Shown here in pieces: positions 56,201 through 64,000 of a stretch of 64,000 bases of DNA. The notes under the pieces are model-generated. The model was not told the DNA's origin. It did no database searches and was given only the letters and a program-made list of their open reading frames with translations. The stretch spans positions 21,142,001 through 21,206,000 of the forward strand of contig CM060733.1 in NCBI GenBank assembly GCA_030704615.1, given 5' to 3'. The stretch is from Takakia lepidozioides. Its lineage: Eukaryota; Plantae; Bryophyta. How positions within the stretch are numbered: the first letter of the stretch is position 1; each line of letters begins with the position of its first letter. The position numbers and the translations under genes are program-made.

Positions 56201-59200
56201 TATCATGAGTCATGTCATGTTGGAGGCTCCAAAACACATTTAGAACCTAAATTCTTATGTAGCTTAGCTCGGATTGCTAGGCCAAGGGTCTGGGAACAAA
56301 AGACAGGATGGGGACAAGGCAAGCAAGTTCAACGGGTGGAATGTTAAGTCAGGGCCATAAACATATCTTGTAACTCATGGTGCCAACAGAATGAGTGCAA
56401 CCCTTACAATTTGATGTAGCGTGAAACAAATTAAGTGCTCAGTCGTACCCGACAATGTAGTTTACTCAGAGACAGATGGGATGTTAAGCTGGATGAAGGG
56501 TTGCCACTCCCAATCCGTGTAGATACCTGCACTGCGTTCTCAGTAGAGTTGCAATTGTGCAGGTTGGAAGCCGGGTGTGCTGCTACAGCTGCAGGTCCTT
56601 CGCCAGTGTTCAGCAAAGTCAATATGCCCTCCTGATGATGAGATACTCCCTCCAGCTCTTGCCACCCTTCCAGCCCACCCCCAATACTCCTTGACCGCCG
56701 ATGTGACAACATCCTCACAGCTTTCCCAGATCCATCTTGGCCAGTAATGCCGAGTTTCTGTGGTTCATTCGACGTATCTAATGGATGCCCACTAACACCA
56801 GCATTCTCTTGGATGTTCCTAAGGGTCGGCAAGTTGTCTAAGGTTTCGACTGAACAGCTACTGTGATCGGCAGCCTCAAGGCTTCTCGTACCCACTGCCT
56901 GCAGATTATCTGAAGTGTCCAATGGATGTAACATCTGACTGGTGGTCACCCGAGCCCCAACCCCAGCGAAGCCTATTCCTGATAATTTCTCCTCCCCTTG
57001 TTCTGCCTCTCCAAACAACAGCACCCCAAACTGGTCATGCACACTCTTAGTGTCTCGTTTAGCTTCCGAAATGCCTGTCCCAGTGGCTTTGTTTAGAGGA
57101 GTGGGGTTTGAACCTTTAAGCTCTACCAACTTGGTTATCTTGGATGCTCCTTCCATCTCGACTTTGGCCCCGACTTTTGTTTCTGGTGGATTGACCTGGA
57201 TTGGATTTATGGGTGACTCTGTGGCCTGCTGGACAGTTACCCCTAAAGTGGCAGCCTTAACAACCTCTCTTTTCCTGTAGTTGCGACCTTTTGCCCATAG
57301 GTTATCAAGATGCTCCGGTGCCAGTGCTTCTGTTCTTCGCTGTGTCACAGCTTCCAGCATTTGCACCCACTCACCACACACAATTGGACCCCCAGCCTCC
57401 TGATCTGTAGTGACCATAGTTTCACTGCCCTTTGCAGGCTGAATCTGCACTGAAGAATAGATATATTTCTTCAACAGTTCCATTACAGCAACATCATTCA
57501 TAGCAAACCAAGTGGGCCTTCTTTCCTAGAAACAATGTGGCTTTTACAAATTGACTACACAACAAAAATGGTTACAAAGCCCGCATTGCTCACCTCTCGT
57601 GTGGACTTTGCATTGGCAGGTCCTCCCCCCACAGACTCTGGTACACCTAATTCTGTCAATTCAAGGCCAGAGAGAGAGGGCTTCCGTGGGGGCAGTCGCT
57701 CAGGGGCACGTGATCTGGTGCTTGCAGATTCAGATGCTTCTACATTAGATGCTTGGTTGGCCTGTTGTAAGTTCTGTTTTGCTGAAGCTACGGCAAGTGA
57801 CTCAATCATCTCATTGATAAATCTGCAAAATAGCAATGGTGCACAAACCAATTTAGGTTTGGAAAGCAGGCTTCAGTCTTTGCAACTAAATCCATCTAAG
57901 AATTTATATCCCAGGATCAATAGGATCTTTTGCTGGATAGAACAAATGTTGACAGCACTCTCCCCCCCGCCCCCAAATCAAACCCGTCAGTGCACCATTC
58001 CTGTTAAACAAAAATGTTACATCATGATGGCTTGCACCAGTGATTTCCTTGCTAACAAAGAGCTGAATGGCCTCACCATGACCACATGCAAGACAAGCTT
58101 TTGGAAACTTGTGCACTCTTAAGAAGATTGGTCATGCAGCATACCCACCCAGGGCAGGCAAAGTTGAGAATGGGTCGCAACACTGCACATGCCAGCAGCT
58201 CCCTTGCTAAGTTCCGTAGCAACCGACACCGTGCATCTTGGGGCCTCAGCACTAAAGCGACCACCCCACCTATAAGCCGCTGCAATACCTGAAAAGAGTT
58301 CCACATTTTAGAACATGATGATACTTCCACTTCCTGCTTTGCCTATTGGAAGCAAATCCACAAGGATGTTGCTAAGTGCGGCATTAATTAATGCTCAGAC
58401 TTACACAACACTTGGACTCCAAAGGTGGGTCAGCTTTATTGGCAGCTGACTCCCATGTCTTTGCAGTCCCTCCCCGTTCTCACTGTTTTTCTCTGGTATC
58501 TTTCATTTAAGCGGTTCTTCTTTTGACGACCATAAACACAAGTCAGAAGCTTAAGATAAGGTGGAGATATCTGAAAAAAGTCAGAAGGCTTTGATGCCTT
58601 TAGCATATACAAATAAGATAGTAGGACAACAGACACATTCTATCCAACAATTTTCTTCCTTAGGCTGCAGGTGCAGTTGCATTTGAGCACGTAGTTTAGC
58701 AAATGCTATTGGTGACTTGGAACCCTTGTTGATCTACTTTGTCTCATGGGCCTATGAGGTTCCCCCTGTGGTTGTTATAAAGTTTCTCTTTCTTCCTCTC
58801 TTTCTTTCTTTGTAACTCAATCTCTCTAAGTCTTCCACTATGAGGATCAGAAATGCTTGGCAGCTTGCCTGCACACCTGGACCCTTCAACAATCCCTTGA
58901 GCATTAGTTGCTTTTGGGCTGTTTTTTGGCTCTGGTTTTGTTTCCTCTCTTTTGTTTTTTCCATTTTGTCCCATAAGCTCTTTGAGCTTTCCGCGGACGT
59001 TATAAAGTACCATCTCATGTGTTCCGCCCAAACTGGGCACATGGTCTATGGCCACAAGGCTATGGCAAACGTATGTTTTTTCCTTTCTGTATACTCTCCC
59101 TCCCTGTGTGGACCACAAATAACAGAGAAACATAGCACATTCCACTCCTAAAGTTCCTAGAGGCCACGTGCAATAGGCTCCAGTTGACAATGCCCAAGTT

Positions 59201-61596
59201 ACTGATCTTGTGTGGAGTAGTATCCAATATCTATACATCCATACAAGAGCTCACCTTGTGCTCTGCATCAGGCGAGATGAGGGCAGGGTGCAATTCCCGA
59301 CCAGAGATCAATGCCTCTTTTAGCCTCTCATCCCTCTCTTCAGACGAGAGTGTGCCTAGCACATTTGGCCCAATCCTTTCCTGCATGCGGCGATAAAGTT
59401 CTAGATGGCTCCCTACTAAATCAACCATGTCCCTGCATGTACAATGAAAAGTTGGATGTTAACATCCATTAAAACAACATTATGTGACCTATCTGCCTTA
59501 TCTTCACACCCATCTTGAGTCACTCTGTGCAGGTGAATGAAGAATAGAAGCGTCAACATCCACCAGAAACCATATCTTCAATAGATGATAGCAACACACA
59601 AACTCTTATATACATCAGCTGTAATTGTAGAAGATTCATTTGCAGAAGAGAGCTGCATTTACAGGGATCATGAAAAATGAGCTACTTGCAAATATGAGCC
59701 AGCTAGTTGGTCCACTGTCCAAACCGCCAAATATCCATGTAAGTGCAGATAAGATGTACAATTTAATGGTAACCAATTGACAAGGTCCATCCACCATACC
59801 TGGAAAGAAGTGTGATAAGGTTCACACACTTGGCACGCTGTGAGACTTCAGAAATCACGCCATTGATCAGAATCCGCAGCTCTTCAGGGGCATCTTGGTC
59901 TGGGGTGATAGATGAGTACCAGAGATTGGTGACCCACTCATCAACCACACACCTTGTGAGCTCATCCACAGCTTCCTCGACAGCTGGAGAATCAATGCTG
60001 CGGCGCCACCTGTACAATAGGCAACTACTATTAGTCCACAAAAGATCGTAAAACAAACAAAGGCATTATATACTACAGCCTTGAATTTGGACAGCATCAC
60101 AAAGCAACTGGATACTTACCCCACAATGATAATCTATTGGCTATGTCTGTTACACCCACATAGAAGTCCACATGGATACAGTTCCACAACTTCACCTATT
60201 ACTGGCCACGTTCGTTGTTGCTGAGAGAAGGGGATCACTGGGGGCAAGCTGGCGGCGATGCAGATGGTGAAGATGGGATGGGCCCTCATAGACTGGAGCT
60301 CTCCATCGCACTTCAATCTCCGAAGAAAGGCGGCGCATTACAGCAATTATAAGAATGGCCACAGGTATGTTGATCCAAACTGAAGTGCTTGTCACTGCAG
60401 AATGGACACAAAAAGAAGTTCAAAAATAGCAAAATCAAATCAATGGCCATATCTGCCATATGACAAAAAAGTAATCACTAAATGAGTCTCCTGATGTGGC
60501 CCACTGGCAGCCTGCTGCTAATCCAAAAACAATGGAGGGGAAGTAGTACGGGGATACAGATGATATCCCACAACAGGCCCTGTGGAATCTCAGCATTTCT
60601 GTGAGAACCTACGAAGTGTCCAAGGTACTTATTAGGTAGCAGCCACCTCTAGAGTGCTCGGGAGTGAGAGAGGCCAACGGCAGAGGGGAGTAGGAGACAG
60701 GAAGGGGGACATGGGAAGTAAGAGCAAAAAACGTGAGGAAGTGAGTATATTTAGGAAGGGTAGGGGTGCATCAAAGTCTTTGAGGAAGGCAGTGAACAGG
60801 ATGCATTATAGCCCTCTTGCACAGAGGTTACAAACGTGCCTATGATTCCAGTGCAAGTCATAGAAATGTACTTATGCAACACCCTGCGAACGTTGGCTTG
60901 CCATAGCCTTACAGCCATCAACCCTGGGGGAAACTAACCCTCCTGGACCCTTTTGTGGGGTTCACACCCATCAGGGTTCCAGTGTAAGACAGACAGAGAG
61001 AAAGTATAAAGAGGAAACTTTCTAAATCCAGGGGACAAAGCAGATTGACAAATGATTCAATGAAGAGCCTGCAAATGTGGGCGTCAACGCCCACTTCAGA
61101 GACCATCAAACAATAGAATGCTCATGTAGGTAGGCTGCCAGGCACTTCAGGACCTCAAAGCTGTAAGCCTCTGCCAAATAAATATCATCCTGCCCAAAGG
61201 GCCCGTGGGGAACATGAACAAGACAAAGGGAAAGATGTATATCCAATCACTCCCTCCTCCAAAAACACACATGAGACAGGCAGGGCAAGGTTACATGTAC
61301 TCGCTGAAATTGCAAAAGCTGTGATCTCAAAACTTAGTTTAGTAAACTGAGTCATAGGAGCAATATTTCCCAATCAATGGAAACTTACCTGAACCCTAGT
61401 GCCCTAGAGCAGTGCCACATATGTTAGCCCAATAAACAAGAATACTCATGACATCACAGGCCTTGCAGAAACACAAGTTTTAGTCTCAGGTTGAAGACAA
61501 CATACAGGACATTAGATAAGCAAGGCTGATGACACAGATCCCCACAAGAATTGTCCTTCGCTTCACCTCGTCCAGTAAATCTTGCAGTGTCTCCAT
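50302..61596 (-). CDS. PXA-PX-Nexin_C sorting-nexin-like protein (EREX/EREL, SNX13/14-type)
   Basis: 17 exons, approximately 61596-61506, 60394-60196, 60009-59800, 59432-59255, 58288-58149, 57822-57576, 57446-56449, 56187-56087, 55877-55732, 54910-54842, 54411-54366, 54022-53491, 53304-53225, 52305-52170, 51358-51175, 50923-50841, 50412-50302. Motifs METLQDLLDEVK, VTNLWYSSITPD, RRFRNFEQLHRRLK..LPPKR, VNVDDAVDD, WSPPKVSVPLLNLVD, VLWPDGIF. Confidence 0.93.
51608..53080. repeat. Inverted repeat arms in the two introns flanking PX exon 14
   Basis: 51608-51890 is the diverged reverse complement of 52525-52727, 52806-52925 and 52949-53080 (e.g. GAGCCCCTCACAAAGGT versus ACCTTTGTGAGGGGCTC). A partial copy lies at about 59021-59070. 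Confidence 0.85.
52355..52452. repeat. Three-copy ~34-bp tandem repeat
   Basis: GTT(G)CACACAGTGGA(T/C)GGACAGAGATAGGACGCCA three times, just upstream (on the - strand) of the exon 14 acceptor. Confidence 0.85.
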
Positions 61597-61872
61597 GGCT
61601 TTGACAGGAAGACGTGATTGTGTTCCTGTTTCTAGTTCTTGTACACATGTGATCTCTCCCTCCCCCAACAACCTCAGTTGTGTCTATGTAGAGCCTTCCA
61701 GTTGTTGATGACCGCCTCACAGTGAACGAATCAATGTCTATCCTTGATCTCCTTTCTTGCTTCTTGCCTGCTCCCTCTGGATTATGAACGTAGTCCACAA
61801 AACAAAGTTCCAGCACACACTTCCCACCCAGTCATATTATCCAGTGACAGTAATCCCAGGAAATGGAACATA

Positions 61873-62719
61873 TCAGTACTTGCCCTGAACATAGACGGTG
61901 CCAACGATGAGAGCCACAATGGCAGCCTGGAAGCCCACATGAGCCCTCATGAGAACTTGACTGCGGTTGAATTTTCCCTGCTTGAAGGAGATCAATCCCG
62001 CTAGTAAAACCCCTGATGTTGCAAGAGCGCCTGCCACATATATCATACAACATATTAGGTGAAACTCCAAATGTGCCCAAAGCCAGAGTGCCTCCTCAAG
62101 AGAAAGAGAGAGAGAGAGTGGACGAGAGTGACAGGGGTTGAGGTTCAATTATTCTCAGAGACAAAAAAGCACCAACAAATTCTAACATAGAAGATGCGAT
62201 TAATAGGATGTTGTCTTTCAATCCAAGATCAAATATGGTACAAAACCGGGAATTAGATAACTGCTGCTACGAGAGTCCATGCAATAAACTGCAATCTAAC
62301 CCTAGAAATGCCAGTGCTAGAATGCTATCTCCTATTGCGAGGAGTGTTTTCGGTATAGGAACAGTAAAGAGTACATTTACAACTTCATACATGGGATATG
62401 GCACAAGAATTTACTCTAATATGCATAATGCTTTGCAATTACACAGATGTCCCCAACCTCGGCCACTGACCCAGTGAGATACAATCCCTGCTCTGTCACA
62501 ATGGCTTGTACTCTTTAAACGGACACTGCTTATATTCTGGGGCATGCACCCATGTTCCCATACAGAAAATAGAGATGTCAATTTCTGAATCCTGAACAGC
62601 GCTGTCAGATGGGAGGGAGAAAGAGAGAGAGAACCAAGTGGAACAAGAGGGTTGCAGTAGTCCTTCTTGAAACCAAACATGTCCTCTGCCTCAATAGCGA
62701 CCAGCTCACTTGACACCAT
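61873..62719 (-). CDS. HIG1-domain (hypoxia-induced gene, Rcf1-like) small mitochondrial membrane protein, 80 aa
   Basis: Exon 62719-62635 (MVSSELVAIEAEDMFGFKKDYCNPLVPL-G), GT-AG intron, exon 62030-61873 (ALATSGVLLAGLISFKQGKFNRSQVLMRAHVGFQAAIVALIVG..). Matches the plant HIG1 consensus NPLVPLGAL.TAGVL.AGLISF..G....Q.LMR.RV..Q. Confidence 0.88.
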
Positions 62720-63170
62720 TGCTCCTTCCAGGAGAAAACAGCGTGGTCTGAACCACAATTTCCTCCAACAATCCAGTACGCAACTACGAGAAAAGATATA
62801 GGGATACCTCAACCAAGTCAAGGTGAAGCTTGGTATCAAAACGTCTTCGGGAGCAAGTTCCTTGTGACACTTGATGCAGGAAACGCGGCTTCGTTGCACT
62901 TCCAAATTAAGCTACTCGAGCAACTAAAGCATGTCACGCTCAAATCTAGTCCGTCTGTCAAAATTACGCCAAGCAATTGGCTCTAGGTTTTGCAATGGCC
63001 TGATAAGACAACCTCTACTCCATTGGATCGATGTAACGGATCACAACAACAAAGAAGCTTCCTTGAGCAAAACCCAACTATCCAAAATCCAAATCTTCCA
63101 TCCGCACCGATTCTCTGCTCCCCCTCTCTCCCTTCTCTCTCTTTCAAGGCAAAGGGAACGAAGAGGCAGA

Positions 63171-63186
63171 TTTTATAGGCCACGTG
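63171..63186 (-). promoter_or_regulatory. TATA box and G-box upstream of the HIG1/PX locus
   Basis: CTATAAAA on the - strand (63171-63178) next to CACGTG (63181-63186), followed by a GA-rich leader. Confidence 0.45.
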
Positions 63187-64000
63187 TACCAAAAGTAGAT
63201 TCATCCCTGGGTAAAACCATGGTTATATCAACACTTTTACGTGTAAAGTAAGTTTGTAATTTCAGCTGCTTTGAATTTCAAAGCTCTGGACCCAACGGCC
63301 TTCCAATGCTCCCGCCCTCGGTTTCAGTAAGTACTGCCTGGTCTCTGAAAGGAAGGAAGGAAAGAGTGACAAGCCACACTGCCTACTTACTCAAGCCTCA
63401 CAAACCCAGTCAAACACACCGCTCACACGTACTGCAAGCATCACACATAAAAAGCCTGGGGGCTAATAATATAATGTATCAAGCAATCCTCTTCTTGCAG
63501 ATATTGATCAGCAGATATGAATTTTGGCTTGATGATGTTGTCAATGGTGGGTACTAGTCTGAAAGTGGGCCCTCAAGTGTAGCATGATATAGAGGGAGGA
63601 GTTCACTTCATTGTTACACTATAATTTTCCAGTTTACTAGTAGCCTGATTTGGTGAACTTCAGGCTCCAATTTTAATGCAAGTGTCAAAAGAAATGAAGT
63701 GCACTCAACTCATATGATGCAACAAAATTAGTGAGAATGTGCGGTGAGGAAACTGACCAACAATTGCAAGAAAAAAGCTATTGTGGAAAGCAGAGAGGCT
63801 GTTGATTGGTGGCCATGTGAACCTTTTTGGGGGTTCTTTGTACAAGGAAAAACCCAAGCTTTTCGAGAAACGAGACCGAGGCCCCTTAAGAGGGGGGGCC
63901 CTCATTATGTAAAGCACTCCAACCAACTTAGAGTTGTGATGTGCATAAAAGTCTGGAGTTTGGTGAAGGACCAAAGAAATTTGCTGTGTCCAAAGGGATA

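Follow-up and report, generated by a model that had tools for sequence, protein, structure and literature searches.

To our knowledge, nuclear messenger RNAs (mRNAs) with two real protein-coding open reading frames (ORFs) are still rare in land plants, and most of the reported readthrough RNAs are minor by-products. The present analysis concerns a stretch of 64,000 nucleotides (nt) of the genome of Takakia lepidozioides (GenBank assembly GCA_030704615.1, contig CM060733.1, positions 21,142,001 to 21,206,000; hereafter the window), in which a small gene for a HIG1-domain protein lies directly upstream of a gene for a sorting nexin with PXA, PX and Nexin_C domains (the PX gene). All features of this locus are encoded on the minus strand and are given in window coordinates. 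The spliced HIG1 ORF of 80 amino acids (aa) ends at 61873, 276 nt before the PX start codon at 61596 on the same strand, as correctly counted in an earlier note on this DNA, which proposed that the two ORFs share a bicistronic mRNA, with HIG1 possibly acting as an upstream ORF (uORF), or are fused by splicing. The assembled RNA shows that the HIG1 and PX parts are contiguous, that an alternative splice joint exists and that the contigs of both parts have equal depth. With confidence slightly above even, we interpret the two genes as a single transcription unit whose RNA contains or lacks a complete HIG1 ORF before the PX ORF, depending on which of two splice donors is used.

Comparison with known two-ORF transcripts

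In Arabidopsis, 271 loci have been reported to give polycistronic readthrough transcripts (Kurihara et al., 2022; PMC9768141). The HIG1-PX locus resembles these in that two same-strand nuclear genes appear in one spliced RNA, in that the layout is not evolutionarily conserved, and in that the stop codon of the first ORF lies far upstream of exon junctions, so that sensitivity to nonsense-mediated decay (NMD) is expected. In many of the Arabidopsis cases, however, an intergenic intron removes the poly(A) site of the first gene, whereas the HIG1-PX spacer is retained whole and such intergenic splicing is not found. Also unlike the Arabidopsis RNAs, an alternative splice at this locus removes the start codon of the first ORF, and the joint RNA looks, by the depth of contigs, like the main rather than a minor form.

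The CDC26-TTM3 mRNA of plants and green algae (summarised in PMC11291117) is similar in that a small ORF of 65-80 aa, which encodes a real conserved protein, precedes a larger unrelated ORF. CDC26-TTM3 is conserved from algae to angiosperms and translation of both of its ORFs has been shown, whereas the HIG1-PX arrangement is absent in every relative checked and is known from sequence and RNA contigs. In the green algal bicistronic loci with leaky scanning (PMC11291117), ORF1 often encodes a small mitochondrial or respiratory-assembly protein, as HIG1 does, and the spacer is short and devoid of structures resembling an internal ribosome entry site (IRES), as it is here. Those loci combine weak ORF1 start contexts and few internal AUGs with spacers that are often shorter than 100 nt; by contrast, HIG1 has an optimal start context, two in-frame and several out-of-frame AUGs precede PX, and the spacer is 276 nt long, so that the weak ORF1 context and the paucity of AUGs before ORF2 that go with leaky scanning are not found.

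The coupling of a plant HIG1 module to an unrelated downstream module is also known from Arabidopsis ATL48 (AT3G48030), in which HIG1 is joined to a RING module and which is listed as an Rcf1 homologue (PMC5877523), confirming its link to Rcf1/HIG1. ATL48 is one fused protein, whereas stops separate the HIG1 ORF from the PX ORF and no splice fuses them; no in-frame junction from HIG1 is present among the joints. Taken together, we would place the locus with the readthrough/bicistronic kind, as a lineage-specific member in which, unusually, a splice removes a start codon.

RNA contigs across the HIG1 and PX genes

The RNA data are assembled Logan contigs (k = 31) of two public runs from two studies (denoted X1 and X2), which were aligned to positions 58000-63400. 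Each run yields a bridge contig, without mismatches, in which HIG1 exon 2, the stop codon, the entire spacer and PX exon 1 are followed, across a splice, by sequence of PX exon 2 (62031-61506 spliced to 60394-60291 in X1, and 62088-61506 spliced to 60394-60291 in X2). Neither run has a listed joint between 62030 and 61506, a region where bridge contigs and genome are colinear. Because the introns have zero depth and the joints are of the GT..AG type in both runs, and the key contigs show no mismatches, this material can be attributed to RNA of the same organism.

Contig depths in X1 are 31.4 for the 5' exon, 32.6 for the bridge and 24.5-41.8 for the PX exons; the corresponding values in X2 are 4.3-7.5, 4.67 and 4.3-5.3. 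Between the runs, the level of the locus shifts seven-fold but the HIG1 and PX parts remain at a ratio close to one, as expected of one transcription unit; the depths of a HIG1 paralogue are 32.6 and 44.1. The bicistronic or uORF-type mRNA envisaged in the earlier note is supported at the level of contigs, as opposed to single molecules, with both ORFs on continuous spliced contigs of equal depth in two studies, whereas the proposed splice fusion is not. Candidate donors at the HIG1 end (about 61883 and 61879) and an acceptor at 61776, which had been suggested as parts of such splicing, do exist as strings but are not used by any RNA joint.

The 5' leader and the choice of donors

The likely promoter edge and transcript 5' end are at 63198..63229. 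An X1 contig spans 62807-63198, with zero depth above 63249, and a TATA-like GATATAAC (63229-63222) is located about 30 nt upstream of the position where the contig ends, which is a contig end rather than a mapped transcription start site. The TATAAAA (63177-63171) and CACGTG (63186-63181) motifs previously taken for the core promoter upstream of HIG1 fall inside this RNA contig, at odds with that assignment; two alternative core promoters, one with TATAAAA/CACGTG and the other with the TATA-like GATATAAC, are possible.

The common 5' leader exon (62808..63198) contains three tiny uORFs (ATGs at 63101, 63023 and 62932) and ends at the alternative donor GAG/GTATCC (62808). Within an optional extension of this first exon (62635..62807), which terminates in the donor TTG/GTTCTC, lie the start codon of HIG1 (62719) and its coding exon 1 (62719-62635), which comprises 28 codons and 1 nt. 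The joint 62808>62030 (GT..AG, GAG/GTATCC ... CAG/G), which is found in X1 at a depth of 15.9, removes the HIG1 start codon; the respective intron of 777 nt consists of the extension and the regular HIG1 intron (62634-62031, 604 nt, GT..AG), which has zero depth at 62163-62524. Another X1 contig (62836-62638, depth 12.2) continues past the donor at 62808 toward the HIG1 exon 1 donor, and its 32 unaligned letters fit the junction of HIG1 exons 1 and 2. The acceptor of HIG1 exon 2 (62030) is common to both splice isoforms, and the depths of the two forms (12.2 and 15.9) sum to roughly that of the common 5' exon (31.4). With the HIG1 start codon bypassed by the joint 62808>62030, a complete HIG1 ORF is missing from about half of the transcripts that start upstream, as estimated from the contig depths of one run. 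This use of the alternative donor at 62808 was not foreseen in the earlier note.

CT-rich, microsatellite-like tracts are located just inside both ends of the HIG1 intron, at 62607-62637 (directly after the exon 1 donor) and at 62100-62125. Capture of HIG1 by a transposon was considered and rejected, as neither direct nor inverted repeats are located on either side of the HIG1 segment, and a scan for bacterial-type promoters and terminators was set aside as irrelevant to a plant gene.

The HIG1-domain protein and its paralogue

Domain and homology searches were run exon by exon; exons were concatenated solely to list upstream AUGs. HIG1 coding exon 2 (62030-61873, TGA at 61875-61873), which encodes the second helix and is covered by contigs, on its own matches the HIG_1_N family (Pfam PF04588; E = 3.4e-11; 43.6 bits, the cut-off being 22.4; positions 9-51 of the 52 in the profile) and human HIGD2A (PDB 9i6f_N; E = 3.3e-4). 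Judging from these matches, the two-exon, 80-aa ORF is a genuine HIG1-domain gene and no chance frame. The type 2 HIG1 family is characterized by the QRRQ motif, (Q/I)X3(R/H)XRX3Q (PMC7762129). The window copy reads QVLMRAHVGFQ (QRHQ), with a histidine at the second, invariant arginine, and HIGD2A is aligned to it as QLMMRTRIAAQ; the complete QRRQ signature is thus not found, and by its sequence the window copy belongs to the HIG1-domain proteins but deviates in this motif.

A paralogue that is expressed in both runs keeps an arginine codon (CGG or CGC) where the window copy has the histidine. It shows 9 differences in 131 nt of exon 2, and was noted at 61898-62028, 62670 and 62696; the 8 listed differences, at 7 positions, are half synonymous and too few to gauge selection. 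The paralogue contigs, of 970 and 1050 nt, diverge immediately past the coding part. Protein homologue searches with HIG1 exon 2 and with the 91-aa ORF (region 41-91) as queries retrieved no relatives, and a metagenome scan for exon 2 gave 598 pattern matches and 0 relatives, so that synteny is testable from the PX side only.

The spacer and the upstream AUGs

The inter-ORF spacer (61872-61597, 276 nt, G+C content 46%) is retained whole in the mature RNA contigs. Neither an AATAAA-like hexamer nor a TATA occurs in it, and none of its stretches is A/T-rich and terminator-like. The fold of the spacer is not better than that of shuffled sequence (z = +1.13) and no Rfam family matched it, which speaks against an IRES-like structure or a known RNA family. 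A pyrimidine-rich patch is located directly before the PX ATG. Reading in frame from HIG1 into PX, five stops are encountered (61875, which is the HIG1 stop, 61839, 61740, 61719 and 61686).

The HIG1 start codon has the optimal context GCAATGG (A at -3, G at +4), and the PX start context, GCCATGG, is strong. The AUGs before the PX start are located at 62680, 61950, 61940, 61892 and, within the spacer, 61871, 61835 and 61648, the last of which opens an ORF that overlaps the PX start out of frame. In the inclusion form, the HIG1 ATG would, given its context, capture most of the scanning ribosomes.

Absence of the HIG1-PX pair in relatives

Relatives were obtained by a search with the PXA exon against 1.84 billion representatives, followed by locus look-ups. 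The resulting PX loci are from Marchantia (L006/7), Ceratodon (L011), Sphagnum tenellum (L012) and five moss-like assemblies (L001-4, L005, L008-10, L014 and L015), and L013 is a PX complementary DNA (cDNA) contig of another moss that is present in many public runs. The closest relative, L001-4, has a PXA exon 86% identical to that of the window and the same intron layout. The two HIG1 exons had no tblastn match in the 3-10 kb upstream of PX in nine bryophyte loci or in the 1453-nt leader of the L013 cDNA, and a blastn comparison of 64000-61400 with all PX loci matched only PX exon 1. Since HIG1 is absent upstream of PX in these nine loci and one cDNA, the HIG1-PX adjacency is, by sequence comparison, specific to the window lineage; the conservation that characterizes a functional bicistronic mRNA is not observed. 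These results run counter to the earlier suggestion that HIG1 is a recurrent 5' passenger of PXA-PX genes, and the bryophyte synteny proposed as a check of it is not found in the nine loci.

The L013 leader contains 23 upstream AUGs and no recognisable protein ORF, so that distant starts and AUG-rich leaders are usual for the PX gene. Of this leader, only the last ~75 nt could be aligned with the genomic locus L005, an indication of a leader intron.

Interpretation of the locus

Under the single-unit reading favoured here, transcription would start near 63198 and produce a first exon with two donors. Use of the donor at 62635 would retain the HIG1 start and give an RNA with the 80-aa HIG1 ORF followed, 276 nt on, by the PX ORF, whereas splicing from 62808 to the acceptor at 62030 would lose the HIG1 start and leave short uORFs, mostly in weak context, before the strong PX start. 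Both forms would continue across the spacer into the PX exons. The inclusion form would be the source of the HIG1 protein, and most of the PX protein would come from the skipping form through leaky scanning or reinitiation. Because the HIG1 stop is upstream of many exon junctions, NMD probably acts on the inclusion form. The arrangement presumably arose recently, by juxtaposition, and would not be an ancient operon-like pair. An extended version of this scenario, which we regard as improbable, holds that one promoter serves two unrelated proteins and that the choice between the donors 62808 and 62635 is a regulated switch between a mitochondrial HIG1 mRNA and a translatable PXA-PX mRNA, with the QRHQ copy drifting from a respiratory-complex factor to a regulatory uORF.

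Besides the RNA contigs, this single-unit reading is favoured by the lack of a poly(A)-signal-like hexamer and of a TATA in the spacer, by the optimal context of the HIG1 ATG that the skipping isoform removes, by the long leader of the L013 cDNA and by the intact PX gene. Several points weigh against it. A contig across two genes shows no single transcript; at k = 31, two separate mRNAs that overlap by at least 31 nt would yield the same contig, and depth is a single mean per contig. The X2 bridge contig begins 58 nt into the HIG1 intron (62088), which could reflect an internal PX start site or unspliced RNA. The skipping joint comes from a single contig of a single run, where one side measures 28 nt, and the joint of HIG1 exons 1 and 2 was deduced from the contig with the 32-nt unaligned tail, being itself absent from the listed joints because its donor lies in a masked CT repeat (62607-62637). 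Finally, six upstream ATGs, those from 61950 to 61648, mostly in weak contexts, are left before PX in the skipping form.

The strongest of the alternatives, which we nevertheless consider unlikely, is that HIG1 and PX are two independent, tightly packed genes, such that HIG1 mRNAs end in or just beyond the spacer, PX transcription starts in the spacer, in HIG1 exon 2 or in the HIG1 intron, and the assembler merged the ends. Such merging of overlapping mRNAs is possible with contigs, the X2 start at 62088 fits an internal start, and the pyrimidine-rich patch just before the PX ATG is compatible with this arrangement; moreover, plant poly(A) signals are degenerate, so that the missing AATAAA is weak evidence. 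However, although the level of the locus differs 7-fold between the runs, 5' exon, bridge and PX exons agree in depth within each of them, and the variation of the HIG1 paralogue is independent of this. The skipping of the HIG1 ATG in about half of the RNAs that start upstream would be wasteful for a stand-alone HIG1 gene, and the spacer contains neither a TATA nor an A/T-rich, terminator-like stretch.

A further explanation, to which we assign a rather low probability, is readthrough noise, whereby a weak HIG1 terminator gives rise to non-productive, NMD-targeted chimeras and the PX protein is made from a less visible start of its own. Polycistronic readthrough RNAs are common in Arabidopsis, their second ORFs are rarely translated and they are removed by NMD (PMC9768141). 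The layout is conserved in no relative, as expected of a by-product that is not under selection, and the strong HIG1 start together with the many internal AUGs disfavours PX translation from the inclusion form. Against this explanation, the depth of the PX exons never exceeds that of the upstream exon in either run, with no sign of a PX-only pool, and the skipping isoform is abundant.

An ATL48-like HIG1-PXA-PX chimera, produced by splicing from a donor at the HIG1 end to an acceptor before or inside PX exon 1, is disfavoured to the point of being negligible: although HIG1 and PX share a reading frame on the unspliced leader, GT/GC donor-like strings occur at the HIG1 stop and ATL48 shows that plant HIG1 fusions exist, the colinear bridge contigs of both runs contain no such joint, including at the weak acceptors at 61627-61639 that had been proposed to fuse HIG1 in frame to PX, the five in-frame stops separate the ORFs, and a fusion protein has no support.

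The PX gene

PX coding exon 1 (61596-61506) encodes a hydrophobic N-terminal anchor and is followed by the joint 61506>60394. Exons 2 (60394-60196), 3 (60009-59800), 4 (59432-59255) and 5 (from 58288) and those that follow, down to about 50305, were mapped by GT..AG joints in contigs and by tblastn with the Ceratodon orthologue (P0160, 1161 aa, with PXA, PX and Nexin_C). Residues 1-1160 of this orthologue align to 61596-50305 with gap-free coverage and, on this basis, the nexin gene is considered to be intact. Pfam searches with single exons detected PXA (5.7e-12) and PX (3e-8), and the N-terminus is 60-70% identical to those of bryophyte orthologues. The protein fits the PXA-PX-Nexin_C class of sorting nexins (SNX13/14/25-like; 'phox domain-containing protein' in plants), with Nexin_C assigned via the Ceratodon alignment only. 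A paralogue of the PX gene is also expressed in both runs (noted at 60321-60360). Within intron 4 (59254-58289), a very large number of diverged RNA contigs (90-95% similarity), whose summed depths reach about 34,000, match the segment 58724-59085 with many odd joints and loose ends; the segment looks like a dispersed, transcribed repeat or transposon fragment.

Judging by exon structure, mosses seem to have two PX gene lineages. The first (the window, L001-L005 and L008-L010) has introns between the first coding exons; in the second (L011, L014, L015 and L006/L007) the N-terminal half is intronless and the neighbors are conserved, with DUF155 and Methyltransf_16 upstream and BURP downstream. 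The Marchantia gene is wholly intronless (3165 nt for 1054 aa), and L005 and L015 come from one assembly, so that both lineages are present in a single genome. Some PXA-PX gene models carry long N-terminal extensions (P0043, P0015/P0012), with ~200 extra residues and no Pfam domain in Chara braunii; these may be gene-model fusions with upstream neighbors. No hidden HIG1 was found in the N-terminally extended models, of Chara and others, and one of them has DUF502.

Implications

Both genes seem to have the joint RNA as their main product, and synthesis of the upstream protein would depend on the splice choice. Given its young layout and the concurrent expression of a free-standing HIG1 paralogue, the locus could show how a gene takes over the promoter of its neighbor and how a long uORF develops from a coding gene. 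For annotation, the locus is a warning that the HIG1 ORF could be missed as 5' untranslated region or that the two genes could be wrongly merged. If one of the alternative explanations is true, this is merely a tightly packed gene pair; if the donor choice is indeed a regulated switch, the locus would be a young, observable case of a protein-coding gene becoming the uORF of its neighbor.

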